A DNA stretch of 64,000 nt from Botryllus schlosseri (lineage: Eukaryota), in contig CM119380.1 of NCBI GenBank assembly GCA_051294905.1, forward strand, positions 2,604,001 to 2,668,000. The letters run 5' to 3'. A program made the position numbers and the translations under genes. The notes beneath the pieces were generated by a model. That model saw only the letters and a list, made by a program, of their open reading frames with translations. It was not told the DNA's origin and did not search any database. Positions 1,549-58,487 of this stretch are shown here, in pieces (the first letter of the stretch is position 1; each line of letters opens with the position of its first letter).

Positions 1549-2254
1549 CAGGGCCGTAAAAGCACTTCGTCAGCCCCCCCCCCCCAAAAAAAAACGTTGG
1601 TCCTCGGCCCCCATATGGTGATAAACCGAACTTCAGTGAGCCAGCGCTAAGCGCGAAAATTTTCGATAATTCATGATAAAATCGGTCAATAAGATCGGGA
1701 ATTGCATATATATTGCTATCAATGTCTTGTCCTCTCTGCTCACGTAATGAGTTTTACCGGTAGAGCTGAGTGAGATGTCTTTGAAACTGTACAGTCCGTA
1801 AATAATGATTGAACATCTTCGGGCGGGCGGACTCGTTGGTATGACTTCGTTACATGATGTTATTTCGTGACCTCCTGTCTGCTATATCAAAAATATAGAA
1901 TCACTCAAACGTACTAGACTGAAAGATCACACGGTTTCGGATTGGTATTTCTTCACTGGCATATAATTTTTTCTTACAGGATGATATTTGTCTTGTATGT
2001 TTGTCTCGCTGCGATCGTTCTGGCACACTTCTTGGAGTCGCATGTTTCATGGCCTAAAACGTTATATGTCTTTGTGCTTCGTGCCGCGGTAATGGCCAAC
2101 GACGATATGCCAATTTCTATAAATCTTGCCTATTTTTCTTGGGGGTAAAGCACCCAATAATCAAGATATTTGGCGACTTGAAATTGCGCCTAGCGCGAAA
2201 TATTTTTGAAAATATTGCATAAATTGGGTTTGGGGTGCGGCAGTTACGGCCCTG
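1549..2254. mobile_element. hAT-like MITE (CAGGGCCGTAA family)
   Basis: TIR CAGGGCCGTAA / TTACGGCCCTG; imperfect 8-bp TSD GTAATATG/GTTATATA; homologous to 62950-64000. Confidence 0.65.
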
Positions 2255-2534
2255 GTTATATAGCATCAATTCATTAGGGTTAAGTACATGCGTAAATGAC
2301 GATTATACAACATCCTTGTGTTGACGATTATACGCGTATGATAAGCTTGTCGACGAGTCCGAAAGAGCTGTTAATTAGCGACTCCCTGATCTGTCGTGAA
2401 CAATTGAATACGCGCGCTTATCAAGGCATCGAACAATAAAATACGCGCGCTGACCAATGCGTCTTACGTAGCCCCGGCCAAAGTATGGTAGGCCCAAGAC
2501 GCGGTAGTTAGGCTAGCAATATCTTTCGTATACT

Positions 2535-2715
2535 AGGCCTATTGCAGATGCGATTGTGCAGGCCAGCGATGATATCGTGCGCAACAAGCCAATGCAGATG
2601 CGATTGTGTAGACCAGCGATGATATCGGGCACACAGGGCCAATTGCAGATGCGATTATTCAAGCCAGCGGAACTAGGCTTGTTGGAGACGCGATAAATCA
2701 GGCTAGCGACGATTG
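2535..2715. repeat. ~50-bp tandem repeat, 3-4 degenerate copies
   Basis: GCAGATGCGATT recurs at about 2544, 2594 and 2645. Confidence 0.65.
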
Positions 2716-2782
2716 CCTAACGCGTGGCAATAAATGACCTGATTTCGCAATTATCTCAGCGGGAGATCGTGTCACGTTACAT

Positions 2783-3109
2783 TAGGCTTACCATACCAAG
2801 GTCATATTTCCCGCTCAGAGCTCAAAATACCGTTTTTCACTCCACTTTGCCAGGTGCATGACTAAAAAACAGGTCATCTTTTCGCTCAGACCTAAAATCA
2901 CCGTTTTTCACTCCGAGATACACGCCGGAGCTTCACTTCTGTGCTAATTTGCGGCATATCACTCGCAATTTGCTCTAAATCTGACTTAAATTTTCAAAAA
3001 AGAGGACAAAATCTCAAACAAGAGGACAAAAGGCCGTCCTCCGAGGACACTTTCAAAAAAGCCAAAAAAGAGGACCAATCCTCTTAAAAGAGGACGTATG
3101 GTAAGCCTA
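2783..3109. mobile_element. hAT-type MITE
   Basis: TIR TAGGCTTACCATAC / GTATGGTAAGCCTA; perfect TSD CGTTACAT. Confidence 0.9.
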
Positions 3110-7508: not shown

Positions 7509-10500
7509 GGGGGGAGGGTACTGCTAGACTCACAAAATTTTCAAATTGCGATATTTCATAACCAATTGATGCTGGATTCCTAAAAATTGGTGTGTGAGCT
7601 ATTTAGACTCAACTTCATATACTGCAAGAATTTCAGCATTTTACGATGACTCCTTGGGCCCAAATTGGGGGGGAGATTGGCGAATCGAACAAGTAGCACG
7701 GGAAAACGCCTGTCTCATCGATGGATGCTGAGAGATTCTAAGCAATGCTTTATAAAGTGTCCCGAGGCCTATAAGAACCTGCTGAAACGCTTGAAACTTC
7801 CGATATCAAAAAGAAAATTACGGAATATTCGTTTGGTGCTAGTGAGGTGCTGAATTTTCGATTTTTTTTCGTAAAATTCAGATTATAAGTAGCATAGTGC
7901 GTATACTAAATGTCAGGTAGCAAAAACAATAGTTTCAGCAGGTAGAGCAGTCCTACCGCTACTACTAACCCAAGTTTGATCAGGATTGAAGGTCTTTTGA
8001 TATAAAAATTTCTTGTCCTCGTGACCCCATATTACCAAAAACTAAAAATGAGAGAAAATCAACTTTGAAAATTGAAAAATATTTTGGTGAAAAAGTAGAG
8101 CAGGTATTTGAAATCTGTTGCCTTTAAATGTTGTAGGCATGCTTTAATGAGTATATAGCCAAATTTGAAGGAAATTGAATGATCCTAAATGCGAAATAAA
8201 AGATACAAATTTTGTGCGATTTGATGATTTTTCACTCAAAATTGCTATACCAAATTTGAAAATTTTCTAAATCCTAAATCAGACATCAGTTAGATGTTGT
8301 ATAGACGAAATAACATATTGTGAATACTGCAACATTGTCAATACCGATCGCATTTGGTACGAGGGAAGATATTACACCCACATTTACCTCCCGAGATCTT
8401 TCAAACAAGCAAATTTTCGGCATCAAATGTAATAAAAAAAAACGAAACAAACAATATCGAACGTTGCAACAGTGAGGAAAGAATCAATGATGCAGCACTA
8501 ATATAATCAAAATTTTCCTGCACTGTAAGTAGTGCCTTCGTGTCTCTCAGACTCTCTATCCTTGGATAAATCATCCAATCTTTTACGTTTCCGTTCCCGC
8601 GTTGTGTCAGCCTGAGTGTGAGATCGTTTAATTCTGATGGCATCGTCTCTAGATGCCGCATCTTTGACGCGGGGACTCATTGGAACTCCTGCAGAATTGC
8701 ACACATTGAACAAACCTTTTGCACCATTGTTCCATCGTATAACTGCAAGAGCCACCACAAATTCCATGTAGTCTTTACCAAAAAAAGATTCCTTGGAGCA
8801 TCGCTTCCATAATGTGCTGTGGAGGCACTCATTCGCATTTTGAGTTTGCAGTTTCATGCACCTAGAAAGCAAATCTAAACTTGCAAGATCTTGAAATACA
8901 GGTTTTACTGCTTGGAACATTTGAGGTGTCAGTGGATGGTACTTGCTTTTTGGTAGTGGTATCGGATCACTAGCTCCTTCCCGTTTAGCTTTTTTGTAAA
9001 AACACCACGCCTCATCACAATAACCATGAGTGGGTTTTTCCGGGGTTGAACAATTGTGCAACAGTATTGCCCAAACTTTTTTTGAGGCTTCTTTTGCATC
9101 GGGTGCACTATTCACAATGGCATTGTGGTAGTACTGACTCCACTTTTTTATTCTGGGAATACTCAATTTGCCGACCCCTCCCATTTTACGTTTTTTTAGT
9201 TTTTCCGTCTGTACGACCTTTGTTAATCTGGTGTACATTCTTTTATTGACGTGGTTGATGCACTCCTCCTTTACCACAGCGATGGACCTATAGGGTTTTG
9301 ATTCTTTCAGCATTGCCATCACTGAGGAATCTCCATCTGAAATCATTGTAGTGTAACGAAATCCTATTTCTGCAGAACGATGCCAAAGAATTTTGGCTAT
9401 ATCTCTCTCCGTGGCCCCCGATGATCCCTCGTGGTTTTTATAGCATACTGGCTGGTGTTCCTCTCTCCACTTTTTCAATGCTTCATCCTTGTACCTTTTT
9501 TCGTTGGTATCGCAAACACGCCAATATTTAGATTTTACTTCATAGTCGAGCACAAAACCTGTGCTCGGCTCTATGACGAAGCCGATGCCATATTTACTGA
9601 CATGCCCCCTTTTTTGCCAGGTTCCGTCATAGGACACACTGATATTGGTCAGGCCATTTTCATCACTTTGATCATATATATTTTTTACAGACTGTCTGGA
9701 TGAATCAATGGAATCTTTCAGAGTAGATTTGGTCCTGTTATAGATTAGAGCTGAAATTTTTTCGAATGATTTTTTGGAAATGCCCTTTTCAATACCCATC
9801 ATTTCTGTGAACGAATTCAGCTTAGCCAAGTGCATAGAATTTTGCAGAGCAGAGAACACAGCTCTTGTGTTTATTTGGTGATGGGAATGATTCTTACCGT
9901 CGAGTTCTACGATATCTTTCATTTCGGAGGTGTATTGTCGAAAAATTTCTTTTTTGCAGCATGATACTCCGATAATAATTTGAGTTGCAAATCCTTTATG
10001 CTGTATGCAGTTCCAATAGCCTTTGTCAGTTGAGCCACAGTCGGGGCAATTCACAATTTTTTGAACAACTGAATCAAAAAATGCAAAACTTGCGAGGAAA
10101 AACGTCTCTGCAGAATCTGAACCACCACTTCCAGATGTTGAGGGCGATAAAAGGTCCAATCTTTTCTCAAAAGATTTCTTAGGAACTACCGGTACTTTTC
10201 CGCGATTATAGCATTTTCTTTTCCTGTTGCCAAATGCCTTCTTAGTGGTTATCTTTGTCCTCATAATCAATACAACGATTAGCAATCAATAATCTACCAA
10301 TGCAATCTTGAAAATTTCCCAATATGATAAACAAAACACAGAAAATGGATAACTTTCACCTCTTCTCTTGTGAGCGAACAGCTGATCGCAATCCAGGAGT
10401 AGTAGGATTACAATGTTTTGAACGTCACGCTTAATCGATTACAGATATGGCTCTTCTACTCACTGTATGAAATGATGATTACTGATTGTTTACAGACAAT

Positions 10501-12600: not shown

Positions 12601-13180
12601 CCTATAAGCTATATAAAATAGGCTTATAGATTTTTTGTTAACGGTACTTTGCAAATCAACCTGTACACATAAAACATAATGATTATTAGTCGAATAAATT
12701 CACTACTTTATATGCGTTATGATCAACTATTTCACAGATAGGGTTATGCTATGGCCTCAAAGTCTATCTGGTATTACTTTTTGATCCTGTGGATATACGG
12801 CCGTCGAGTCATCAGAAAATCATGACTAGTGTCATTACCGCCCTGGCTGTGGTACAGCTGATACTTGAGTGATGCAGCTGCATATCCACAGGGCCTTACT
12901 TGTTCCCCGACTTTTGTGAGTGAAAAGTTGTCACACACCGGCACAAGAAAGCTTTGTAAAACGACTGTAAACCAGCTCGTTTTTTCGCTCAAAAACATTG
13001 TATAGTATTGATGAGTATGTTATCAATACTTATTTTGCACCAAAACGCGGAACCACCATAAAGCGAAGGCTTTAACGTAATCAACTCCAAAACAGCCACC
13101 TGCGCCTATGAAGCTCGATTCAGCTCTGGCCAACCATAGGCCAAGATGGCGGCGCCCGAGAGCAAAAATGAAAATCGTCC

Positions 13181-13715
13181 ATTCATTCGATGTGAATTGC
13201 GGCCCGCCATCCGTGACAATTGTTATGGGCAAGCCTTCGATAGAGAAGACTTCCCTCAAAGCATTGACCACACACAAGGTTGTGGTAGAACCGACATACA
13301 TTACTTTAACGAAAGGATATTTCGAATCCGCATCGACGATGACAAGAAACATTTTATTGTTTATTGGACCTGCGAAATCCAAGTGAATTCGTTCAAAGCT
13401 TTCAGAAGTTTTGGGCCATTCGCGATATTGACGATCAGGCGCTTTCATTACTTTGCGGCAAGCGTCGCAACTCTTTACGAGATTTTCAATGTCGCGATTA
13501 ATGGAAGGCCATGCGATGTAACGTCGAGCCATCTGCTTCATTTTCGCGATACCCCAATGTCCTTCGTGCAACAATGATAAGACTCGCGAGCGAAGTGACT
13601 GCGGAATTACTACGCACTGAAAACCATCAATATTGAGCATGACTATGTCTTCGTGCAGAGAAAACGAATGTTTGCGAGTCGAAAACCAAGAAAAATCATC
13701 AATGTGCGGAACTTG
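13181..13715 (-). pseudogene. Ty3/Gypsy pol remnant: integrase zinc-binding region and core N-half
   Basis: LHEGHWG...CDAC (HHCC), RIHLDFAGP, IVTDGGPQFTSNE; continues into 833-193. Confidence 0.9.
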
Positions 13716-17039: not shown

Positions 17040-18174
17040 AATTTCCTGAGTGCCTCTCTGTCCGAAGTTACTTCATCTACGCTGCCTTCTAACACGCATT
17101 TTGTGAGCTTTTTTGGAGTGGTCACTTCCGTAGCCAGGGTCTCCATGTCCCCGGGCTTGCCTTCTTCCACCCATGCCTCGTATCTCCGAATCAATCGCTT
17201 GCCAAAGCGATCATTCGGATAATTTTCTTTACCGGGTATATACCAGTTGAAGAGAAGCCAGATATAACATTACTTTTTGACAGACCCAAACTCCAAATCT
17301 TTCCCAATTGGTCAGCGAAGTTTGCCCGCCTCACTTGTACCATGAATATTCACCCAGCTGTTTAGAACGTTCTCCCGGTGTTTTTTCAATGGTCCAAAAC
17401 ACGCTACGTCGAGCGGTTGCAGTACATCCGTCACGTGCGGTGGTAATTTGAGTAGGATTATATTTTCCTTCATGGCGCAATCGATCACTTTCAGTGATAC
17501 GTGGCTCAGATGGCCATCGAAAATCAACAAAAGTGGTCGTCGCTTCGCCACGTTCCTACTAAAATTTTCAAACCAGCCGGCAAATATCTCGCTGGTTACC
17601 CAGCAGTTGTCACTTACGGCATATTGCGTCCCTGGTAAAGCATCAGGACCGCGCCAGGTGCTTTGTAAATTTTTTCCGCTATATACGATGAGCGGGGGCA
17701 TGGCGGTGCTATCCGCACAACAGCAGGCCAATACCGTAGTGTTAAGGCGACCTGCGCCGCAAGTATTTTTATAGGCGACTTAACCCGATTCGTCGCAATT
17801 CCAAATTTGACTTGCCGACAACTTATTTTTATCCACAATCCTGCCCAGTGATTCATAAAAATCCAATATTATGAATGGATTGGAAGTAACTGATTTCCTT
17901 GCGGAACTTGGACCAGATCCAATAGCTCCGTGTGCTTAATGCTGAAACCAGCTTTGCAAAGAGTGTCGATGAAATTTGCCAGGCTTAGCTCCACGTCGCT
18001 GCTGAAAACTGGCTTTCGTCCTGGTTTTCGCCGCGGTAACTCGGAGCATTTTGCCATTCGGCTTCGCAACGTGCTAACGGCGATCCCGTATTTTCTTGCG
18101 ACTTCCCTTGCGCATTGTTCCTGGTGTGCCACTTCATTTAAAGCAAATTCCATATCCGACTCACTCCACTCCAT
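17040..18174 (-). pseudogene. pogo/Tigger-like (HTH_psq + CENP-B HTH + DDE_1) transposase, frameshifted
   Basis: AREVARKYGIAVSTLRSR, PGRKPVFS, IWNCDESG, LLIFDGHLSH, LPPHVTDVLQPLDVACFGPLK and ISGFSSTGIYP, spread over several frames. Confidence 0.85.
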
Positions 18175-18709: not shown

Positions 18710-19350
18710 TGCCCCAAGTTACTATATCAAAGTCGTGTGTCCGAATCCAATGGATTCAGAGCGTTGCCAAAGAACTTTGGCTATATCTCGCTCCATAGAC
18801 CCCGATGAACCCACATGATTTCTTCTATATGATGCTGGATCACGTTCCTCGCACTTTGTCAATTGTCCCTCATCTGTATACTTTTTTGATTGATAGTACA
18901 AACACGGCTATATTTTGTCTCTACTTTATAATCGAGAACAATTCCTGTGCTCGGTTCCATCACAAATCCAATTCCATACTTGTTAACATGTCCCCTTTTC
19001 TGCCATGTACCATCGTATGACACACTGATATCCGTCAAGGTCGTACTCTCAGTTGGATCGTAGATATTTTTCAGTGACAGCCGTCCTGAATTCAAGGAAT
19101 CCTTCAGAGATCTTTTTGTCTCATCAAATATTAGATTTGATTTTTTTCATGCGAATTCTTTCCAATCCCTTTCTCCACGCCCATCATTCAAGTGAATGAA
19201 TTCAGCTTACGAAGGTGCAACTGATTCTGCATTGCTGAGAACACTGGTGTTTATCTGGTGATGAGAATGCCTCATCCCCTTTTCCACGTTGTTATTGTCT
19301 GCAGAGGTGTGTAATGACGAAAAATTTCTTTGCTACAACACGATACTCCA
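18710..19350 (-). pseudogene. Second Kolobok-type transposase copy, middle part
   Basis: IGVSCCSKEIFRHYTS and DISVSYDGTWQKRGHVNKYGIGFVMEPSTGIVLDY; colinear with about 9340-9990. Confidence 0.85.
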
Positions 19351-20415
19351 ATGTTGCAACGAACAACACATTCATATTCGCAATTTATTCACTATAAGCT
19401 TTTCAACTGACCCTCATCGGTAGTGGCCGTCAGTATAATATGGAGATTGCAATTCGAAATGTAAAGATGAAATAGGTAGTGTAACGAAAGAATGGTATAA
19501 CAACAACAACGGGAGATTTGACAAAACGAGAGCGTTAAAGGTCAACTGCATCTTCAAAAAGACTTTGCATCTTCAAAAAGACTTTCCCTTATTTCGTACA
19601 TTATGTGGTTAGGAACATGGATAAAATAATAAAAATTGCGAATACTCAATAGTTTGGTCGTAATTTAATTTACAAATAGAAAAGCCATAAAACGGAAACG
19701 AAATCACTCAACCATGAAATGACGTCATGTAACTGACACGACAAGTCCTGGTAAACAGAAAGGTATACATTTTGGTCAGTTATAGGGATTGAGTATACAC
19801 TTTTTGCTGTGAATTTGGGTCTTTTAGCGTGGTCATGAAAGCTGTAAAGAAGATCAGCAGGCGTCGAGGTAGATGTCATGTAGCGTATGGTTGATACTCT
19901 CACACGTACTGCCGGTTCTCCAACAGGGGTTAAACCCGCTTAAACGCCAACACGCCAAACGCCACCCTGCGGCTGAGTCTCTACGTGGCGTCTGGCGTCT
20001 GAACGTGTTGAAACGCGGACTGGCGGCTGAATCGCTACATGGCGTCGGGCGTGTGAACGTGTTGAAACGCAGACTGGCGGCTGAATTGCTACATGGCGTC
20101 TGGCGTGTGAACGTGTTGTGACGCAGACTGGCGGATGAAGTGCTATATGGCGTCCAACATTTTAGGACGCTGTACTGCAACATGGCGTTCGGGAATTTTG
20201 TGACGCCGCGTTAGATATCGGAATTAATCATGAACTGAACCACAATTTCGTATTTCTTTCTAATTAGAGATATCATTCTATTGCCAGGATTTACGAAATC
20301 AGTAATCCTAATAATTAAAAACAACTGCATAGCTCCGGTTACCCCTGGCTAGTCTCTGCTGCCCCTCCTTACACTCGCATGGAGATGAACGAGTATTCAA
20401 GTAACTATATTCAAA

Positions 20416-21196
20416 TTATTCTGCAGTGAAACAAGCACAAGAAAAATGACCAGTTTGTAGCTGTTGCCCTGGGTAACAACAATCCTGGTATGTCCGCGGG
20501 TCCCAGCCGTCACATGCAACCTATAAAATACTTGGATCATTATACTGGACAAATCAACTTTTCAAATCCATACCCAATCCGTGATCATTGCATTTGACTT
20601 CTTCATTTATTGCAATAATTTGCCAATTCTCCGTCATCTGTACAGAAAATAGCTTGAAATTATTATTATTTTGCATGTGATATGGAGTAACATACCGGTC
20701 TCATCAAGTAGAAGTTGGCCATAGTACTTTCGGTACTCTTCACAAGCTCGTGCAGAATGATCGAACTGTAGATCTATATCAGGAATTGATGCCCCACTTG
20801 TGCAGTAGAGTTCAGCAGCCTAGTGAGAGTAGGGTACAAATCATTTATTTGATTCGAGCCATACTACATAATTATACATGAAAGTATCAAATACCTTCAA
20901 AGCAAGTACTCCACAATTATATCCATCTTTTTGTACATCAGTCCTGTCCAATTCAGTCCTTGGACTTGTCACAAACTTTCTTTTGGAGTACTTGCGTTGA
21001 AATTGGCTGAGTAAAATAGAAATGAGATACGACCCGTGAATAGCATCACACTAACTCACCGAAACTTCGTTAAAATATCCTTGTACCAGTGCTCCTGGCC
21101 TATTAAAATGTCAAACTCCGAATTGAGAGGGCAAAGGATACCCCTGAACTTAGTATTTCAAGGATACCCCTGAACTTAGTATTTCATCCACACATG
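20416..21196 (-). pseudogene. Spliced Ulp1/SENP-like (C48) protease C-terminal region plus PHD-like finger, decayed
   Basis: Exons 21196-21060, 21006-20895, 20819-20696, 20637-20574 and 20520-20416 joined by GT-AG introns give ...DVQKDGYNCGVLALK|AAELYC...LLLDET|DDGELANYCNK(frameshift)...TDW|VACDG...HFSCAC. The catalytic His motif is not recognisable. Confidence 0.65.
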
Positions 21197-21289
21197 CTGC
21201 AAATACAATTACAATTACTTTAAGAAGAAGAATTTCAAACTGAGTATTGGATAAATTGATATTTTGGCGTTTGCCATCTGCTGCAGTGG

Positions 21290-21770
21290 ATGTAACGGGG
21301 TGCATCTAACTTGTATATGTCGATGCGTGGCGTCGGGTATATCAGCTATGCAGCCGCCACGGGCTGCGTCTAATTTGTGCATGTCGATTGTCGCCGTTTC
21401 GAGTCTGTATGTATATCGTCTGTCCTCTATCGAGATTCCACAGGATGCATCTAATTTGTACATTCCGACGCTTTGCGTCTGGAATATCAACTATTCAGAA
21501 GCCACGGGGGCATCTAACTTGTATATGTCGACGCGTGGCGTCGGATATATCAGCTATGCAGCCGCCACGGGCTGCGTCTAATTTGTGCATGTCGATTGTC
21601 GCCGTTACGAGTCTGTATGTATATCGTCTATCCTCTTTCGAGATTCCATAGGATGCATCTAATTTCTACATTCCGACGCTTTGCGTCTGGTATATCAACT
21701 TGGCGTCGGACATATCAACTAGGCAGACGCCACGGGCTGCGTCTAATTTGTACGTGCTGACGTCTTGCGT
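21290..21770. repeat. 208-bp tandem repeat (~2.3 units) built from 60-80-bp subunits
   Basis: GCATCTAACTTGTATATGTCGA at 21302 and 21510; internal GC(A/G)TCTAA subunits. Confidence 0.85.
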
Positions 21771-21894
21771 CTGATGTAATCTACGTAACTACGTCGCTAG
21801 CCAGCTACGTCATGAGATTATGAATAAAAAGGCTAGTTCTACGAAGTGCGAAGGACGGTATGCAAGTAGGCTCTAAAGCAAAATCTCGACAAAC

Positions 21895-22079
21895 CTTGTA
21901 AATCTGGCCGGACGGTATGTTCTACAATCTACACGGTTAGCCCAGTGTACTACCTCAATATGATCATGTAGCTTTTGCACAGTTTCAAAACTGATGTCGC
22001 ATGGACTGCAACTATTTTCTTCAACTGTAACGATTTTGATAAGGTTCGTCAAGTCCTCAGCTAAAGTCATTTCTGCCAT
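21895..22079 (-). CDS. Putative first exon with a single C2H2 zinc finger
   Basis: MAEMTLAED...CSPCDISFETVQKLHDHIEVVH, ending at a GT donor (ACAAG|GTTTGT). Its link to the Ulp1 exons is inferred. Confidence 0.45.
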
Positions 22080-22459
22080 TGCTACGAGGAAACTCATCCA
22101 GTAACCAAACAAATAACTGTAGCAGCATAGTGTCGATCTCATTTCGCCAGACAGCATTGTTGCGTCACTATGTCACTCTGCAAAACAATTAAAAATTCGA
22201 GGCTTATTATGGGGGTTCCGGGGCAACGAACGAAATATAATTTATATTTTTGTAATCAGTGCAGCGTCAGCTTTCAATTGATACCCGTTTCATCAAATTG
22301 AATGGTCAGCAAGCCAGTCAAAAATCGCCGTCAATTTGCCTTTGACTAAATGTAACTAAAGTATGACGTAGACCGATTTCATTGAGCCGTGAGATTTACT
22401 TGTGTCGACGCCACTGAGCTATATAAACGGTCCGTGGACATATTAGCATGCGACACAAT

Positions 22460-22555
22460 AGCATGCTCATGTGTCCCCATGCTCATGTGTCCCTACGCTC
22501 ATGTGTTACCATGCTAATGTGTCCCCATGCTGTAGCGTCGCATGCTCAACTGTCG
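22460..22555. repeat. 16-bp minisatellite (CATGCTCATGTGTCCC)
   Basis: 4-5 degenerate tandem copies. Confidence 0.65.
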
Positions 22556-24038
22556 TTTTGCATTGTGTCGCATGCTCATATGTCGGGCAACCATATAAAC
22601 ACCATATAGGACACTATGGTACCAGACATTATTCCTCCATCGAGCAAGATAATATTGCAGCGATAAATCACTTTGATTCACCAGCACCCCCTTCCATCTC
22701 GATGAGTAACTTTGCCTATAAATCATATCCTATACACCGGACGCTATGCAACTGGCTATCTACACACGGCACAGCGTCTCGAAATTGCCAGACGCCGAAC
22801 GCCATGTCGCAGTACGGTGTCCTAAAATGTTGGACGCCAGTCGCCATATAGCACTTCATCCGCCAGTCTGTGTTTCAAGCCAATCACACTCCAGACGCCA
22901 TGGAGCAATTCAACCGCCAGTCTACGTTTCAACCACTGAGCTATATAAACCTGGCAATAGAATTATATCTCTAATTAGAAAGAAATACAAAATTGTGGTT
23001 CAGTTCATGATTCCGATATCTAACGCGGCGTCACAAAATTGCCGAACGCTATGTTGCAGTACAGCGTCCTAAAATGTTGGACGCCATATAGCACTTCATC
23101 CGCCAGTCTGCGTCACAACACGTTAACACGCCAGACGCCATGTAGCAATTCAGCCGCCAGTCTGCGTTTCAACACGTTCACACGCCAGACGCCATGTAGC
23201 GATCCAGCCGCCAGTCTGCGTTTCAACACGTTCAGACGCCAGACGCCAAGTAGAGACTCAGCCGCAGGGTGGTGTTTGGCGTGTGGCGGGTTGGCGTCTA
23301 GCGGGTTTAACTACAGAGACTGTAGGATGGAGTGACGACTGATTTAAATGCCTAATTAATATTCATCCGAAACATATTTTGTTTTCATGGTTTTGCAGCA
23401 ATTATCTTGTAAAAATGAATATTTATGGTATTATTGCCCATATTACTATAAATATTTTATATTATACTGGTATTAGTGCATTGATATACCGAAATATCTA
23501 TATAAGTTGAACTACTCTATTTACACTGCGCGCAATAATATTTTCAACTCCCTTTAGATCGGTCACGCTCCGCTTTGCGTAGGGAGCTACCCATTGTTAC
23601 GTATACCACTATTAATCCAACATGGAATTCAGACGGTGGAAAGTTGAATTTTTGTTGGTTTAATGCATGGTTGTCGATGGGAGTGGGTCGGAGTATTGGA
23701 GGATGAATACTTATAACGGACTCTGTTACTAATTGGACGTCCTAATATGTTTGGCCGGATTAGCGAATATCTTGGATACTTGCGTGACGGTCTTGCGTTT
23801 GTTGCCGTACGAAGCGATGAATATGCCGGTATATCGCTGAGCAATGCGCCCGGTCGGTGAATACCAGCGATGATTTATGATATAATAGCTATTATAGTGG
23901 CGTATTATATGATGATAGAAGATAACAATAAAAGGGCAGGCGATGAAAATGAAACGGAAAAACGGAAATAAAATTCCGAGTATTATGCTTTCACAGAAAT
24001 TTTGATTCCTTTATAACCGATACTTTTTCGTAAAAGTT

Positions 24039-24566
24039 ATGGCCGAAGAATCATTGTGGGAGGATTGGGAATCCATCACCGAGGAGGAAATTTCCCAATG
24101 CTTTGAAGGATTGGATGAGTGGAGTGGAATAAGTTGTGACGTCTGTGAAGCCATATTTCCCACTGTAAGGGAACTCAAGAAGCACGGGAAAGTGCATAAG
24201 CTCCCGTCACCAACTGAGCAAATTGACATCGACCGAGTAATCAACATTTTGAAGATTGCTTGCCGTAATTGTCATTCTATTTCCAGGTGTGGACCACGAT
24301 TTGAGGAATTGGATTTAAATCTTATTGTTCCACTTGTCAAACGCTTGAATGCTGCGTTCTGTGACGTTGGTACTGATGGTATTTATCAATACTACTCCAA
24401 CATTTGCCAGCAGGGAAGCAAACTTCTTGGACTGCAGCATCAGCTTCTTGCTGCATCTTTGCTCGTGAAGATTGTTGATGCACTTGTTCAAGCTGAGGAA
24501 AAAGTTTCCACTGCAAGAATGTCTGGTATCAATAGGAGGGAATGGTATAATATGCAATTCTGTTGA
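24039..24566 (+). CDS. 175-aa protein: acidic N-terminus, one C2H2 finger, helical remainder; probably a truncated transposon accessory protein
   Basis: ATG-started ORF; CDVCEAIFPTVRELKKHGKVH; lies inside the TTAA element. Confidence 0.6.
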   Translation: MAEESLWEDWESITEEEISQCFEGLDEWSGISCDVCEAIFPTVRELKKHGKVHKLPSPTEQIDIDRVINILKIACRNCHSISRCGPRFEELDLNLIVPLVKRLNAAFCDVGTDGIYQYYSNICQQGSKLLGLQHQLLAASLLVKIVDALVQAEEKVSTARMSGINRREWYNMQFC

Positions 24567-24604
24567 ATGTGTGGTGTTAATAATGAAATTTAACAGCATA
24601 CCAA

Positions 24605-25100
24605 TCAATATTCTAGTTCCGTGTGCCGACCTTCTATATGAATAAATATATCAATTGGAATCGTTTGGTGCATTGGTTTCTTGATCTGAGTGAGAGATAC
24701 CCCGCATACCTTTATGATTGTGCTACATCTTTCAGGCAAATTTAGCTTAGGCAGAGCTCCCACTTTGAGTTGCTTTCTGGTTTTGAGCTGAATGATATTG
24801 CTCTCCTCAAAATGATTTTCGCACATTGCGGCTCTATTATAAATTAAACTGTTAATTCTGTTGAAGTTGAGACAGCTGCTTTATTTACGTCTCCTTATGG
24901 AGCAACGTCTTGATACGATCTCCTTTTGAGGGGTCCCTGGTGGAAAGAAGGAGGCTGGCCATTGCTGCGTGCTGCTTCTGGGCCGCTTCATTCCTTAATA
25001 GCTCTGGTCTTCGTACCGTGAATAAGGATCTCTTACAAGATTGGTCACTACGCGGATTGTTCACATAGGTACATCCAGGGATGGCGCAGTTGTTGACCAT
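24605..25100 (-). CDS. Spliced THAP-domain gene (short or truncated)
   Basis: Exon 25100-24889 (MVNNCAIPGC...HKE), phase-2 GT-AG intron 24888-24834 (55 bp), then in-frame AAMCENHFEE...GALPKLNLP, completing the C2CH and AVP-like box. Confidence 0.75.
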
Positions 25101-25780
25101 AATTGCCGTGGCGGTTCTATTATTTTTACTGCTAAAGACGCGAAATGTGCAACTGGATATAAGACAATGCGATTTAGCCTAGTGAACAGAAAAGAAACAA
25201 GTACAGTCTTCCAATGTAACATAGGCCTAATGCCCGATGAAACAGTGTACGATATTGATCTTTTGAATGTATTGATAATCTTTTCGTCGCTATTTTTCAT
25301 CCGCTTTACGTGTAGGCTATTCGTTTTTTCATCGGTTGCTTATGCACAGAAAATAGTTTGGTATCGGTATCAGCGGCTTTCAACGGCCACTCAATTATTA
25401 CCGCATAAAGCCTTATCAATTATAGCATTGTCTACGTGTTTACGGGATTCGGCCGCGGAGAACTTGTCACTGATTAAGGCATTGCGGGAAATTAATTTTA
25501 AACGTGTTCTGGGTGGAGGACAGTTGTGAAATTTTTTTAGTGAGAACATATTGATGCTTCCTCGTAACATGCGAAATTTGAACCGTCTAGCCAGAATATT
25601 TCCACCCTTTTTCGGCACTCAAATTCGTCCATGCATTTCCGAAATCGCCTATACTTTTACATGTAAAATAGGACAATCGGACTTTCGCGAATGGAATTTT
25701 ACTACGCAAAGTCAAGCGTGACGGATCTAAACTTAGAACAATGGGTCGTCGCTCCATCCTACAGTCTCTATAGTTTAACC

Positions 25781-26981
25781 CAGTGTTGCCAATTTAGCGA
25801 TTTTCGCGCTAGATCTAGCGATTTTTCATCTGGTTTAGCGCCAAAAAATATGGATCTAGCGCTTAGCGATAAATCTAGCGATTTTTGAAAAAGTATTTGG
25901 CGATTTTTTAGCGCTTTTTTACCGAAAATAACCAATAAAGATCAGTTTTGGCTGACATAACTTCAAGTTGTGGAGCATTTCTTGCTCCATAAAAATACTT
26001 TCGGACGATTTGTCATAGTTGAGTGACTTTGGATAGTAGAGATACGCAACTCCTGGCGGTTACGCATGGGCAAACAGTGTATCTCTTCTTGCTGAGTAGC
26101 ATAATTGGCAGTGAAATTTAATATAATTGACCACGATCGAAAGATAGTTTTTCGCAGTGATTTCGAAAATACAAAATAAAGTCTTGTCCGGACAATGGAA
26201 CCATGCACCCCGAAACAGCCTTCAAAGTTTGAAAACCGGCGTTGCTCCAACAATGGCACCGCTGCAACACAATGAACATAACAATGACCAATTTCGTCCA
26301 GCGATTGTTCTGATTAATGCCGATTTTCAGGTCGTTCCATTGTCTTGACATGAATTTAATTCGTATTGTTGGAATCAGTGTGACACGAGCTTTCGTTTAG
26401 GACCAGAGTAATTACATTTCATACCCCGGGTTGGTCCTCAGATTTTTTTCATAATGTCTCTATACTTATAGTGGCTGGCAAACCCGGTTCATGTCGTGTT
26501 GTGTCGGGTCAAGTCGCATGTCGTGTGCACGTGTGTCAAGTCGCATGTCGTGTTCAAGTACTCCAACACAGTTTAGAAAAGAAGTCAAGAGCATTTCCGC
26601 GGTACATCGCATCACGTATTTACGAGCAAGGCGCGCGCTTATATAGTGAGCGGGTATGCCTGCACACCTGGTCATCAGTCACGTATAGCGATCATTGCGC
26701 AAAGCGATCTGCTTTATCGAAATGCACTGCACGTTTTGTCCCGCTTAGAGATGACTATTATTACTTATTTTGAACTAGAAATATGTTAAGTGACTTTGGT
26801 CCTAGACGAGTGAAATATAGCTGAGAAGAATGCATTGAAATAATGGTTCAATTTAACACCTTTAGCAATTAATGTAGATTTAGCGCTATTTTTTAGCGCT
26901 TTTTTTTCAATATTTAGCGATATCTAGCGATTTTTGACATCAGTTTTAGCGATTTTCTTCCATCCGGAGTTGGCAACACTG
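25781..26981. mobile_element. hAT-type non-autonomous element
   Basis: TIR CAGTGTTGCCAA / TTGGCAACACTG; perfect TSD GTTTAACC; TAGCGA subterminal repeats. Confidence 0.9.
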
Positions 26982-29359
26982 GTTTAACCCCGTCATATTC
27001 TTGCAACAAAGAAATTATGGAAAGAAGATGTCAGAGGAATGCTATAAACCTACTAAGTGTCTGGAATCGTTAAGTGGAAATGTATTGTGTCGGCCAGTAT
27101 TGTAAGAGTGTAACTAACCGTTTCTTCTTGTACTTATATTGTTTTCACTCGAGTACATGTAGAAACAATTATGCCTTGAAAAACTTATGAAGTATAAGTG
27201 TACTAGTCTGAAATAAATCCACTTCACTGATTGAAAAAGTAGGGGCTTTACTTACTGAAAATGGAGTCTATGACCACTGACCAGCCTACTTCAGAACGGT
27301 TACGTGGCTAACCAGCTTTTTATGGAAAAGGTATACTCTTAGTTTTGAAAATGAAATTCTGTTTGTTTAGTCGTATAAGTCATTTTATTTACTGAATGGG
27401 GAGTGTCAGATATCCCTGACTGAACACCTCTGGTAGTCATTACTAGCACTACATCGATTTAGGCTTTATCTTCGAAAACTAGGCTTTATCTTCGAAAACA
27501 AGTTTTCAAGGAAGAACAAAAGGTGGTACACGGAAGAGATACACGTTCTCAAACTCAAAATCATTCACTGATGAAGCTGTTTGAGCCGGAAAGCCTGCAT
27601 GTCATGTCGGCAGCAAAAGTTAAGAGGATAATATCGATGATCCATTAATATATCGTAATCTGTGTAGTTGTAGGCTTACCTCTCAATATGTTGACTTGTA
27701 GGCATACCTCTCAATATGTTGACATCTCAGTAGAGATGAAAAGGTACCGCTATCACCATAACAGTTTGAATGTTAGGTACTGTGTAATATTATGGCTGTT
27801 CAAAACAACCCTTATCAGATTTCATATGCATTTTTGTAGGATGCAGTTGGCAATCCTTCATTCTAATGAATCATTAAGATACAACATTTGGTACACTGCC
27901 TTCAATCTGACAACATTTGGTATACTGGCTTCAATCTGACTGTTACCAAAACTTTGTAATATACTTTTACCTGTTCTAGATTACTTCAATGAAAAAGTTG
28001 AAGCACTCATCAAAACAAGATCAGGGACGGCGGAGTTGCCCAATTCTATTAAGATTGTTCATCCTCATGCGACTACTGACGTCTTCAAAATTAGCTGGGA
28101 CAAAGCTATTGCCAAACACAAGACCTGATATATATTTCTCTCCCTGACACAGTAGTCAGTAGTGGTCCTGATGGATTAGTTATGTTGCATGTATTATTTT
28201 CAATAAAACTATTCATTCACAAGGAAGCATTGCAAAATTGAAATCTCTTCATCAAAGTATTGGATGAGAATTTTGATCAGATGGCGGTAACAACGCGCGC
28301 AGTAAGGATTCTTCGTTTCGTTGTTTTTACGTGGGATCCACAAGGCCAGCGAACAAAATTTCTCTACGCAGTGTTTCGCAGCTTCCTGAAAAGTGTAATT
28401 GTTGCGTTAGGAAATTATTTGGCAGCTCACTCGACGTTTCATTTGAATTAAACTCATTTACTCATGCATCGAATGAGGTGTAATAATTCTGTGGCCATAT
28501 TCCTGTTGATATCCACAGTAAGTCATGTCCAATGCATCAACATCAGGACACACTGATTGAAATGCTGTGATGCATTCTTCTGTCACTTACTCGGGGGGAC
28601 CTTCTTGCTGCATAAACTCTCCCTAATATTTATCATAAGCTGACAACCTCCATAGTCCATACTGACACCTGTAATTGATAATACCAAGATTCCTAACTGT
28701 AAAGAGGTGATGCACTAACTCACAAATACCACTATAGACAAGCGGCTTACGTTGAACAAGCTATAGGCTGATCATACTATTGATTACTAACCTTCTTCGG
28801 TTAGTAATGTATAATCACACGCAAAAGACCTATCGTTATACGAAGCTGCTAGGGGTTCCACTGATGTTAGATGGAGCGAATCAACACCAGAAACGCGTCT
28901 GCATTTCCACATTATTTTCGTAGGTAAGTGCAAAAGGTATACTTACATTCGACATCTGAGAACTCAGACTCATTTTCAATATCCCTTGACGAATCCGTTA
29001 CAAGCAAAACCTCCGCCATCAACTAAAATAATCGCCCTGCGATTGGGAGTACACAAACATCTGCGGTGGTGAGAAGAGATGTCATGTACCTGACGTCACA
29101 ATGCACATTCTGCTTTTTCGATAAACAACCCAATATTGAGACTTTCAGTCCAAATTACGGCCATTTCCGATTAGTTTGAAATACGTAAAGTCGGCAATTT
29201 CGGTATAAAAAATAATTCTGAACATGATTCCGCAAAGTTGTCTATGAAGATGCAGTTGACCTTTAAGCAAAAATGCAATTAGTGCAATACAAATAAGCTA
29301 TAATATATAGCCAGACACGCAACACTAATGAAATACACGGAGAGAATAGAGTCGGTCCA

Positions 29360-29645
29360 TATCTGCAGCAAAACCATTTTGCTGATTTATACTCCAATAG
29401 CCCGTGCCTGTTGAGCCACATTCCCGGCAAGTCACTATATTTTTTATCATACTATCAAAAAAAAACGCATGACTTGTCAGTAAAAAAGTCTCATCCGAGC
29501 CCCGACTTGCACTGGCATGTGAACCTGATGAAAGTTCCAATCTTTTTCTCAAAGGATCTTTTCGACTTCGAGGCTTTTTTTTGTCGTATTATTTTTTTCC
29601 TTCTGCCAAATGCCTGCCGTGTCGACATCTTCACTCCCACCATCA
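29360..29645 (-). pseudogene. Second Kolobok-type transposase copy, N-terminal part
   Basis: KRLELSSG...ETFLLTSHAFFFDSMIKNIVTCRECGSTGTGYW...GFA aligns to the N-terminus of ORF 8507-10285. Confidence 0.8.
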
Positions 29646-47352: not shown

Positions 47353-47467
47353 CCTGTGATATATATGGGATCTGAGCTATTTCAACATTTCCAAGAAGAG
47401 GTTGCAGTGCGACTAAGTTTTATTCGTGAGACGTACATACTTCAAGTGCGTGACTACCACACCCAAC

Positions 47468-50400
47468 ATGTCCGAAGAACTCGTTAACGTTCTTAAGGAA
47501 CAGTTAGAACAGCAGCGTAAAGAGATGGACGAGCAGAGGGCACATAACGAACAGCAGATGAAAGCATGGATGGAGACACTGCGTCAAATATCTTGTCAGG
47601 CGGTCTCCACTGCGCCGGTCAGCAATGTGTTAGTTCAGCCATTTGCGCCATTTGACTCGACAATAGAACTCTGGACCGATTATTGGGAACGCTTCAGTAC
47701 ATTCGTGAGCGCACACTCCGTGCCGAATGATAAAGTGGCCCATGTATTCCTTACGAATCAAAGTCCAGTGGTCTACAAGATGTTGCAGAACATAGCTGCG
47801 CAGCAGGCCGATCCTAAGAAGATTAATGATCTTTCCATTGAAGAAATTAACGCTTTTATGAAAGAGCACTATGATCCGAAGCAATTTGTGATTAGAGAAC
47901 GCTACAAATTTTGGAGTGACATGAAGCGCAAACCTGGTGAAACCATACCACAATTAGCTGCTCGTATCAGGCAAGACGCGATCACATGTGACTTTTCTTC
48001 AATTAAAAATCCGTTGGACGAAGCGATGTCCACGCGATTTATGTGTTCGGCGGGAAATGAAGCTGTTCTAAAGGCAGTATTTAAACTGAAAAGCGATTCT
48101 TTGAACTTCGAGACTGTTGTCAAAACAGCAACTGATACGGAAGATGCCGCCAAGGTAGCAAAAGAAACCGTTTATGGTGCAAAATCCGAAAACCCGTTTC
48201 AAACTAACGTGGTTAAGTCTTCTTATACAAAGAAAAGTAAAGGAGACGCCCAGAACTCCAAGAGTCGAGTTGCTGGATATGAAGGGGAAGGAAGAAACCT
48301 CTCTGAAAAGGCGTGTTTTCGATGTGACAAGTGCGGACACTCTCCTGATGAATGTAAATATGTAGATGCTGTCTGTCATTACTGCGACAAAAGAGGTCAC
48401 ATTCAACCAGCATGTCGTATCAAAAAGAAAGATAGGTTGACGGAGAAATGTGTTCGTAAGAACCGTCGCGTTAGAAGTGTTAAACATACACGATCGTATC
48501 CAGAAATCGAAATCGACGTGTATATCAATGAAGACATCCAGTCATTTGAGTTGGATACTGGCGCGAGAGAAAATTTCATGTCCAAAGACAGATGGATCGC
48601 TCTGGGAAGACCTGCTTTGCTAAAGGTGAATGCTGAGTTCGAATCTGCATCCTTGCATAAACTGAACACTCTAGGTACATTCACACCTAAGAATGTTTCA
48701 CTGACAGATGTGAACAATCGGTCAGAAATATCCGATTTCTCATTTATAGTTACCGATATACCGAATTTGAACTTGATAGGCCGTAGTGGAATATTGAAGT
48801 TAGGAATTTCAATCGATGCTCTGCTATACGGTAACAGTGTTGTAAAATCACTTTCCAATGTTGATTTTTCGGAATTGGCCAAACGCTGCGAGGATATCAG
48901 TAACGAATTCCCAGAACTTTTCAAATCTGAATTGGGTTGTTTAAAGGATGTTAAGCTAGACATTCGATTTAAAAATGATGCGAAACCTATTTTCTGTAAA
49001 TATCGCCCAGTACCGTTTGCTATCCGTGATGAGTTATCCCAAGCGTATGATGTAGGGATAGCCAAAGGTGTGTGGCAACCTGTCGATTTTAATGATTATG
49101 GTACGCCTGTTGTTCCAATTCGTAAACGATCGCTTCCTGGTAGTAAATCGGGAAAGATTCGTGTGTGCGGCGATTATTCTGTTACAGTTAATTCGCAACT
49201 TGAAACGCATAGACAACCTATTCCACTCGCGGAAGAGCTCATGCAGAAATTGGGCGGTGGATATGGTTTTACGAAGATTGACTTGGCTGATGCCTATAAC
49301 CAAGTTCAACTGAGTGAAGAGAGTCAAAAGAGACTTGCTCTCAGCACACATCGTGGGGTCTTGCTGCAAATGAGGTTACCGTTCGGAATCTCTTCAGCAC
49401 CAGGTTATTTCACTGAAATCATGAATCAGCTGACTGCCGACTTGAAAGGTGTAGCTGTTTACCTGGATGACATTTTGGTCAGCGGCGTCGACGCCGCCGA
49501 TCACATGAATAATCTCCGTGCGTTATTGAAGAGACTTCAAGACAAAGGTCTCCGATGCCGAAGAGAAAAGTGCACATTCGCACAACCGTCAGTCGAATAC
49601 CTAGGTCACAAATTATCAAGTGCCGGTATTTCCAAAGGTTCGAAAGTGGAGGCAGTGTTGAAAATGCCTGCTCCATCTAACGTTTCTGGTCTCAAATCAT
49701 TTCTGGGCCAAGTACAATTCTACAGTAAATTTTTACCCAATCTGTCAGCGGTGACGGAACCGTTACACCGTCTTACAAGAAAGGGAATCCCGTGGTTTTG
49801 GGGTAAAGATGCGCAAGATTCATTCGAAGAATTGAAGAAAATGCTATGTGCAGATTTGCTCCTGGTTCACTTTGATCCAACAAAGAAGTTAGGATTATCA
49901 TGTGACGCTTCGGAAGTAGGAATTGGTTGCGTACTTTTTCACCGTTCTGAAGATGGTTCTGAGAAGCCAATTTCCTACATGTCCAAAACGTTGACGGAAA
50001 CTCAACGAAAGTATAGCCAGATTCACAAAGAAGCTTTGGCTATCATTTTTGCTCTCCAGAAGTATCATCAATACTTGTATGGAAGAAAGTTTATATTGGT
50101 TACTGACCATAAACCTCTACTGGCATTGTTTGGACCAAGCAAAGCGATACCGGCCCTCGCAGCAAATCGTCTGGCAAGATGGGCACTGACTTTGAACCAA
50201 TACGATTATGATATTGAATATCGTAATACAAAGCAACACGGTAATGCTGATGCATTGAGTCGACTCCCGTTCAGTCATGACTCCGTATTTGATAAAGGGG
50301 AGGAAGAGGACAATATGAACATTGTTAGCACAGTACGTACTGTGAGCCAACAGATTAATCCTTCTGATCCTGGTATATTGGCAAAAGAATCCAGCAAAGA

Positions 50401-57597: not shown

Positions 57598-58440
57598 ATG
57601 ACAAAGTCTGGAACACATGAAGATGCCATCCTGGCGAGACTGAAGAAGATGGACAGTAAACTGGAAGATACGCTCAGTGAAGTCAAAGGTTTGACACAGC
57701 TGAATATAACACTGCAAAAGCAATATGAAATATTGCAATCTGAGCTTGATAAGACCAACCTAGAGGTTAGGAAACTAAAGGAAGAGAACAAGGAACTCCG
57801 GAAAGAGATAGAAACTTGCAAGACTGGAATGGAATTCATGAATGCAGAATTTGAGAGCAACAAAGAAAATCTAAAACGAGCCTCGCAAGAAACCATGCTC
57901 AAGGAACACGACAAATTTGAATCAACTATGAGTATCCTGAACAAAAAAATATCTGGCCTAGTACGCACCAATGACAACCTGGAGCAGCAATCTCGAAACA
58001 ACAACCTGGAATTTCATGGTGTTCCCTACTCCAAAAAAGAAGATCTGCCGGAGACCATCATGAAAATAGCTAACGCCTTGAAAGCTGACATCACTGCGCC
58101 ACAGCTTGTGCACTGCTATAGAGTGCGCTTCAAAAATCCAGACAAAACAGGACCCATTGTAGCTAAATTCTCTTCGGACCAACCAAAAAAAGAATTCCTC
58201 AAAGTGAGAAAGGCCAAAAAGGATATCAAGGACTTCGGTGTTGAAGGAATGGAACAACTCTTCCTAAACGAAAATTTAACAAATTACAGAAGAGATGTCT
58301 TCTTTGAAGCGCGAGCTGCGAAAAAAGAAAAAAGCTTCAAATACCTCTGGACTGCAAATGGGAATATCTACATAAAAAAGAATGATGGCGCACCCAGAAT
58401 CCACATTGAGTCAAAGGATGACCTCAATAAACTCAAATAG
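57598..58440 (+). CDS. LINE ORF1 protein (coiled coil, RRM-like region, C-terminal KYLWTANG domain)
   Basis: Heptad-rich N-half; LEQQSRNNNLEFHGVP; FLNENLT; FKYLWTANGNIYIKK. Confidence 0.9.
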   Translation: MTKSGTHEDAILARLKKMDSKLEDTLSEVKGLTQLNITLQKQYEILQSELDKTNLEVRKLKEENKELRKEIETCKTGMEFMNAEFESNKENLKRASQETMLKEHDKFESTMSILNKKISGLVRTNDNLEQQSRNNNLEFHGVPYSKKEDLPETIMKIANALKADITAPQLVHCYRVRFKNPDKTGPIVAKFSSDQPKKEFLKVRKAKKDIKDFGVEGMEQLFLNENLTNYRRDVFFEARAAKKEKSFKYLWTANGNIYIKKNDGAPRIHIESKDDLNKLK

Positions 58441-58487
58441 AAGCTGCTATACTGCTCTCTCACTGCAACCGCAACCCACACTAAAAA

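Follow-up and report, generated by a model that had tools for sequence, protein, structure and literature searches.

Four nested transposons in a decayed Mutator-like gene of Botryllus schlosseri, one of them probably a deleted member of a two-gene P-superfamily family

We analysed a stretch of 64,000 nucleotides from Botryllus schlosseri (assembly GCA_051294905.1, contig CM119380.1, positions 2,604,001 to 2,668,000), referred to below as the window; all coordinates are counted from its first nucleotide. At 19539-29262 lies a 9.7-kb block flanked by TTAA, which a preliminary description had taken for a single Kolobok-like element with a THAP gene and a convergent C2H2 gene. The block consists of four nested elements, here designated O, F, X and M. 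Among its parts, the reported genes lie only in X. The whole is probably a pile-up of four transposons in a decayed Mutator-like gene, in which X represents a deleted member of a P-superfamily family with two genes.

Element X and its remaining genes

The features of X are as follows.

23312-25772, no strand: X, putative non-autonomous, internally deleted P-superfamily element, inverted repeats 23312-23348 and 25736-25772, TAYAGAGACTGTAGGATGGAG...
24039-24543, plus strand: partner gene exon 1; its open reading frame (ORF) reads on into the intron to 24566; 2 nt missing ahead of the donor by comparison with the related contig L001
24544-24631, plus strand: remnant of partner intron 1; probable deletion junction at 24631/24632, on a weak basis
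24632-24709, minus strand: remnant of transposase intron 2, beginning at the GTATGC donor at 24709
24710-24833, minus strand: transposase exon 2, C-x2-H, AVPTIF-like half of the THAP-like domain, then the GTATGC donor
24834-24888, minus strand: intron of 55 bp, phase 2, GTAAAT...AG (AC/GTAAAT at 24889/24888, ...AATAG/A at 24834/24833)
24889-25100, minus strand: transposase exon 1, ATG at 25100, C-x4-C

The inverted repeats of X are 37 bp long, beginning with TACAGAGACTGTAGGATGGAG... on the left and with TAT... in the right counterpart, and 34/37 bases are paired. No further match to the terminal motif was found in the window (chance expectation 0.01). When F and M are excised, each together with one copy of its duplication, X is flanked by GGTTAAC on the left and by GTTTAAC (25773-25779) on the right; these 7-bp flanks agree at 6/7 positions, the chance of 6/7 or better being 0.0013. 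A sub-terminal inverted repeat of 30 nt, 87% paired, was noted at 23553-23582 and 25702-25731, about 240 and 40 bp inside the ends. As candidate binding sites of the transposase, its two copies can be compared with the sub-terminal repeats of P elements.

The transposase gene is read from the minus strand. Removal of the 55-bp GT..AG intron, noticed in the preliminary description, keeps the frame and joins C-x4-C of exon 1 to C-x2-H of exon 2, completing a THAP-like motif; exon 2 then reads ...AAMCENHF...GALPKLNLP...IIK as far as the second donor, GTATGC at 24709. The intron is supported by the related contig L004, in which an intron of 71 bp (GTAAGT...CAG) is located at the same codon position and in the same phase. 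Most copies in the host genome carry GTAAGT at the first donor (24884 T>C), where the window copy has GTAAAT. At 24826-24824, most host copies read ATC and the window copy ATG, an Ile-to-Met change private to the latter, and for this reason the start codon of a 73-aa ORF is also private to the window copy.

The convergent gene on the plus strand was likewise found as first described, an ORF of 175 aa (24039-24566) whose N-terminus is acidic and which contains a single canonical C-x2-C-x12-H-x3-H finger. The two reading frames end at 24566 and 24605, which had been interpreted as a breakpoint shared by both genes; these ends instead represent read-through past the splice donors into intron remnants. 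Single-cell RNA reads of the host (about 3% of the run was read) covered the partner exon to a depth of up to about 22, with hardly any on the THAP exons.

X retains partner exon 1 and transposase exons 1 and 2, each with its upstream region, and lacks partner exon 2 and the whole catalytic part of the transposase. The junction of the deletion probably lies at 24631/24632, within the intron remnants, as suggested by weak similarity of the partner side and by the break points of host reads, which cluster at 24632. Other deletion forms are present in the host reads (24237>24674, 24241>24632 and 24250>24635). The earlier view that a two-gene element had been shortened by deletion thus holds for X, with one internal deletion and with relatives that carry both genes. 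A single deletion would have taken all the sequence between partner intron 1 and transposase intron 2, as is the usual outcome of interrupted gap repair after excision, leaving two promoter-proximal gene heads that adjoin the inverted repeats. Such an element would be immobile alone and could be mobilised only via a full-length relative. The window copy of X is itself decayed, because of the GTAAAT donor, the private Ile-to-Met change and the 2-nt loss at the partner donor.

Relatives of X and the convergent C2H2 gene

Relatives of X come from public contigs (Logan contigs and metagenome samples, marine or invertebrate), labelled L001 to L011, with proteins P0001 to P0012. Protein searches were performed exon by exon for the THAP and partner genes alike. 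In a word-based search, partner exon 1 returned one relative, partner exon 2 only the query's own gene, and the transposase fragment two relatives. P0001, encoded on the 2.5-kb Logan contig L001, was the sole relative of the C2H2 ORF within the length range of this search. L001 matches the window only over 23966-24543 (87%), a span which covers the 5' leader together with exon 1 and ends at the exon donor. Beyond this donor, L001 continues with a partner intron of about 130 bp and a second exon running from ...ILEYIGGVLL... to ...ALRDELKSLRT, while the opposite strand carries converging 3' exons of a transposase.

The transposase fragment on the minus strand of L001 is 59% identical to P0002, which together with its cluster-mate P0012 was located on L002, L006 and L007. 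On L007, the GTP-binding insertion domain PF21788 was detected at 7e-15 (55.9 bits, cutoff 24.8), and the P-type helix-turn-helix (HTH) domain PF12017 (22.0/23) and the RNase H halves, PF21787 (23.8/24.6) and PF21789, fell just below cutoff; L002 also matched PF21788, at 7e-11. About 60 extra bases separate blocks in L001 that are contiguous in L006, indicating that the transposase gene has small introns and that L006 and L007 resemble processed transcripts. On L006, the C-terminal motif of the partner, ...KSLREELKSKS..., was found on the other strand, some 100 bp beyond the stop codon of the transposase. For the Ciona relative P0003, no contig placement was found.

The link between the two ends of the transposase was provided by the 2.1-kb contig L004, which encodes P0006 and represents a complete small derivative with 37-bp inverted repeats, 95% paired and homologous to those of X. 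Its plus strand carries a decayed partner gene with remnants of exons 1 and 2. On its minus strand, THAP exon 1 is 44% identical to exon 1 of the window (E 2e-19), and exon 2 (AAICEHHF...) continues in frame to a C-terminus 71% identical to P0002. Since L004 combines the THAP-like head and the P-type body with the convergent C2H2 gene, all three can be assigned to a single element family. X is therein placed, by the domains seen in its relatives and deleted in the window copy, as a putative non-autonomous element of the P superfamily, and the Kolobok assignment once given to these genes is not retained, since the relatives are flanked by sequences other than TTAA and encode a P-element-type (TNP-like) transposase.

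More insertions of the L004-type derivative were found in L005, L008, L010 and L011. L004 and L005 are 98.99% identical over 1,977 bp, and their flanks differ and lack TTAA. The 7-bp flanks of L004, CTGTCAC and CTGTAAC, agree at 6/7 positions (chance of 6/7 or better, 0.0013). All 8 heptamers of X, L004, L005 and L008 end in AC, and most begin with (G/C)T. They recall the 7-bp target GTANTAC of Galileo (PMC4168063); target-site duplications in the P superfamily are 7-9 bp long (PMC3698922). The left flanks of L004 (1-57) and L005 (1-79) are partly similar (ACGAA..CTCCAA..), which may reflect a preference for another repeat or chimeric contigs. A literature search on the terminal motifs gave nothing useful.

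The full partner, encoded by two exons, is predicted to comprise about 330 aa, with an acidic N-terminal region and a single C2H2 finger. Its gene is convergent with the transposase gene, or with the remains of it, at four loci from four separate samples (the window, L001, L004 and L006), and in L004 and L005 it lies inside the inverted repeats. A whole-library profile search with exon 1 identified two family members (P0004 and P0006) among 1.84 billion representatives; four other hits covered the C2H2 finger only, some of them in multi-finger proteins. Searches of Pfam and NCBIfam with both partner exons gave nothing, and the AlphaFold models were of low confidence, with a predicted local distance difference test score of 43.5 for exon 1 and 46.3 for exon 2.

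The C2H2 ORF could be a passenger, that is, a captured fragment of a host gene or a chance ORF without any role in the element. The lack of any family or structural match that would supply a function, and the detection of only one weak finger, agree with this idea. We nevertheless regard it as unlikely, given the same convergent position in separate samples (window, L001, L004/L005 and L006), the conservation of exons 1 and 2 at 45-55% identity in L003, a conserved exon boundary, and a ratio of nonsynonymous to synonymous substitution rates (dN/dS) of 0.16 for exon 1 between the window and L001. The latter value indicates purifying selection on the partner. By analogy with other transposons that carry a second gene, the C2H2 protein is most likely a functional accessory factor of the X family, acting as a DNA-binding helper or as a regulator of transposition.

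Alternatively, L001, L003, L006 and L007 might represent a domesticated pair of host genes, a THAP9-like gene and its neighbour, with X and L004 as unrelated relics. No inverted repeats are present within these four contigs, and L006 and L007 have the appearance of spliced transcripts. This alternative is improbable: both genes are located between homologous inverted repeats in X and L004/L005, the L004-type element occurs at several sites with about 99% identity, and L001, L003 and L006 are bounded by contig ends rather than by element ends.

Nesting of the block and its insertion site

The other parts of the block and the gene around it are listed below; the arms of O end in terminal inverted repeats (TIRs), and M is a miniature inverted-repeat transposable element (MITE).

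18726-19352, minus strand: downstream half of a decayed Mutator-like transposase gene, aligning to 9342-9973 of the intact copy
19535-19538, no strand: left TTAA target-site copy of O, from the sequence
19539-19556, plus strand: left 18-bp TIR of O, AGGTCAACTG..., with a tandem doubling of a 19-bp unit at 19547-19584
19539-19933, no strand: left arm of O, non-coding; 19928-19933 plus C23311 make up the left 7-bp flank of X, GGTTAAC
19934-23306, no strand: F, foldback element of 3.4 kb, inverted repeats of about 370 bp, 93-97% paired, with 54-bp tandem sub-repeats
25781-26981, no strand: M, hAT-like MITE, inverted repeat CAGTGTTGCCAA, very high copy number
26989-29262, no strand: right arm of O, non-coding, with the right 18-bp TIR (29245-29262) at its end
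29263-29266, no strand: right TTAA target-site copy of O, from the sequence
29368-29615, minus strand: upstream half of the same decayed Mutator-like gene, aligning to 9987-10239 of the intact copy

The outermost element, O, begins after TTAA at 19535-19538 with AGGTCAACTGCATCTTCA (19539-19556), and the exact reverse complement of this sequence at 29245-29262 is followed by TTAA at 29263-29266. The perfect 18-bp TIR that starts with AGG and is flanked by TTAA was thus present at 19535-19556 and 29245-29266, as previously described. With up to 3 mismatches allowed, the 18-mer matched the 64-kb window at these two positions only (chance expectation 0.03), and the terminal pairing goes on imperfectly to about 35 bp. 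O by itself comprises 19539-19933 and 26989-29262, about 2.7 kb. Neither arm gave a family match in any frame in a Pfam-type search, and none of the Kolobok transposase motifs (DDE, THAP, H2CH) was found in the arms. Kolobok elements and T2-MITEs are characterized by a TTAA duplication and by RR (AG) termini, AGGRR in T2-MITEs (PMC6004289). By this signature, O is classed as a non-coding Kolobok- or T2-MITE-like shell, although its termini, AGGTC..., have AG and AGG followed by TC rather than RR at bases 4-5. The Kolobok signature noted in the preliminary description therefore applies to the outer shell, with its TTAA and AGG termini, and not to the genes, which belong with the P superfamily.

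M, whose ends at 25781 and 26981 were set by the break points of reads, lies between two identical 8-bp copies of GTTTAACC (25773-25780 and 26982-26989), a perfect duplication. M is 1.2 kb long, contains internal AGCGATTTTT-type repeats and shows the highest read depth of the region. F is flanked by TTAA at 19930-19933 and 23307-23310. Its flanks may also be read as a Galileo-like 7-bp pair, AACAGGG/TACAGAG, matching at 5/7 positions, the TTAA reading being preferred. The ORFs in the interior of F had no Pfam support except a weak C2H2 match at 21876-22172; a short ORF on the minus strand (20844-21050) carries a ...DGYNCGV... motif that may suit an Ulp1-like assignment.

The separate origin of these elements was reflected in the depth of host reads, which was about 280 on the shell O, 2000-3000 on X, about 7000 on the repeats of F and 10,000-45,000 on M. 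X is thus about 10 times commoner than the shell, and M, with a depth far above that of the rest of the region, is a major repeat family of the B. schlosseri genome. Contig breaks or loose ends were found in the reads at 23311, 25773/4, 25781 and 26981. The original target in the interior of O was the palindrome GGGGTTAACCCC. X entered O first, at this sequence, followed by F, into the TTAA of the left flank of X, and by M, which was inserted into GTTTAACC on the right flank. Because the original target was palindromic, every boundary can be read as TTAA. Two warnings for annotation follow from this locus: the palindromic target GGTTAACC makes three unrelated insertions seem flanked by TTAA, and the outer pair of repeats made four elements pass for one.

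As another possibility, X might be TTAA-specific, of the piggyBac or Kolobok type, and F, X and M three TTAA insertions at one hot spot; the boundaries in the window can indeed be written as TTAA at 19930-19933, 23307-23310, 25775-25778 and 26984-26987. We judge this very improbable. With a TTAA flank, the repeats of X are shifted by one base against each other; a contig from a different copy of X diverges from the window directly after 25774 and not after TTAA; and the relatives L004, L005 and L008 lack TTAA. The idea of three TTAA insertions was dropped for X on account of register and relatives, and for M on account of its break points and perfect 8-bp duplication. An assignment of O, F or X to piggyBac was rejected separately, the CCC...GGG termini being missing (O starts with AGG, F with ACCCGC and X with TAYAGAG).

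That the whole of 19539-29262 is one Kolobok element, its own THAP transposase and C2H2 partner truncated together, is hardly tenable even though the outer TIR and TTAA are real and suit the signature (PMC6004289) and Kolobok transposases carry THAP domains, since the genes are bounded by a second pair of inverted repeats, 37 bp long and with flanks of their own, the element so bounded is some tenfold more abundant than the shell, and its relatives occupy non-TTAA sites and encode TNP-like rather than Kolobok domains.

The site of insertion of the block could be identified by comparison with the intact Mutator-like gene at 8507-10285 (592-aa ORF, PF20700), which aligns on both sides of the block. 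The decayed copy shows about 70% DNA identity to the intact ORF, and judging from this alignment a second Mutator-like gene, now decayed, is split by the whole block of about 10 kb. As had been stated before, the gene pair in X has no relation to the Mutator-like transposase located at 8.5 kb. The inserted stretch, about 19353-29367, is some 283 bp longer than the TIR-bounded element, the difference being filler at 19353-19534 and 29267-29367, between the Mutator-like halves and the TTAA ends of O. No inverted repeats, obvious duplication or GT..AG intron signals were found in the filler, which may be an older insertion that O entered. The comparison of the empty site with the intact copy reveals the insertion of about 10 kb, and since the filler separates O from the Mutator-like halves, no clean TTAA empty site is seen for O. 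The window copy of X is dead and has no functional consequence except the disruption of an already mobile Mutator-like gene.

The 64-kb window as a whole is rich in transposons (Mutator-like, Gypsy-type, LINE (long interspersed nuclear element), pogo-like and integrase fragments). An intact-looking Gypsy-type pol ORF of 1417 aa lies between 200-bp direct repeats (47426-51679), and a LINE with endonuclease and reverse transcriptase, preceded by an ORF with a baculovirus-FP-like domain, occupies 57598-61402. A pogo-type DDE_1 fragment was found at 17312-17731 and an integrase fragment at 13023-13640. An Rfam search of the window gave no match.

A probable P-type family with two genes and its comparison with known systems

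From the relatives, full-length members of the X family would have two convergent genes between 37-bp inverted repeats. Gene 1 would encode a multi-exon transposase with a THAP-like N-terminus, a P-type HTH domain and an RNase H domain split by a GTP-binding insertion domain. Gene 2 would encode the two-exon protein of about 330 aa with the acidic N-terminus and one C2H2 finger.

Several observations weigh against this interpretation. Among the copies recovered, none was full-length with two intact genes and both inverted repeats, and the architecture, as assembled here, is a composite of overlapping fragments from different samples. The THAP family PF05485 matched exon 2 only, at E 0.003 and with a sub-threshold score of 18.6 bits (cutoff 23.9). 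The spacing from Cys to Cys in the THAP-like domain is about 64 residues, as compared with the usual 35-53 residues, and the conserved P and W look replaced. Exon 1 of the transposase alone had no Pfam match, and neither the transposase fragment nor either THAP exon had a relevant hit in a sequence search of the PDB. No RNA splice joint was seen for either intron in the host single-cell reads, again in about 3% of the run. The partner intron 1 remnant up to 24631 shows a weak colinear similarity that is within the shuffle range and non-significant alone. The X copy of the window is also flanked by TTAA, and taken alone this copy would be compatible with TTAA targeting. The 7-bp flanks match poorly in two of the metagenome copies, L005 (3/7) and L008 (4/7); these flanks may stem from different insertions, joined in chimeric short-read contigs spanning a 2-kb repeat.

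P elements are the textbook single-gene cut-and-paste transposon, with THAP9 as a domesticated human relative. In the literature searched, with Repbase not covered, no description was found of a second gene in a P-superfamily element. We tentatively suggest, as a possibility rather short of an even chance, that marine invertebrates harbour a P-superfamily lineage with a conserved convergent gene for an acidic single-C2H2 protein that lacks detectable relatives beyond the family and is needed for transposition or regulates it, and that this would be the first two-component element of the P type. If true, a P-type family in which a second protein is obligatory or regulatory would extend the short list of two-component eukaryotic transposons, and would offer a new way to study how P-type transposases are targeted or held in check.

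With respect to the outer elements, O resembles the Kolobok elements and T2-MITEs, including Xenopus XKol (PMC6004289), in its TTAA duplication and AG/AGG termini, and T2-MITEs also in being non-coding, even though it is long for a MITE. It differs from Kolobok in the absence of a transposase and in TC in place of RR, and the THAP gene earlier credited to it sits in X. M is like the hAT-type MITEs in its 8-bp duplication, short CAG... inverted repeats, lack of coding capacity and very high copy number; no transposase relative was identified, and the assignment comes from the duplication length and terminal bases alone.

Two-component organization is known from other superfamilies. PIF/Harbinger elements encode a DDE transposase and a Myb-like DNA-binding partner, and ISL2EU a THAP-DDE transposase and a YqaJ nuclease. 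The X family likewise pairs a transposase with a second conserved gene inside the repeats, and the partner likewise has a putative DNA-binding module. It differs in the superfamily of the transposase, and the partner, a C2H2 finger with a helical region without family match, is unrelated to theirs.

The closest comparison is with the P superfamily itself, which includes the P element, 1360/Hoppel, Galileo and human THAP9. The relatives of X share with it the P-type HTH domain, the split RNase H and the GTP-binding insertion domain, and the family is also alike in a multi-exon gene with small introns and perhaps in its THAP-like N-terminus. Internally deleted, non-autonomous copies such as X are common in this superfamily, and the 7-bp flanking repeat with GT..AC-like ends may correspond to those of Galileo and 1360 (PMC3698922, PMC4168063). 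The X family differs in its atypical THAP-like domain, with a long spacer and no evident conserved P and W, in its hosts, which are marine or invertebrate samples rather than Drosophila, and in the second, convergent C2H2 gene inside the inverted repeats.

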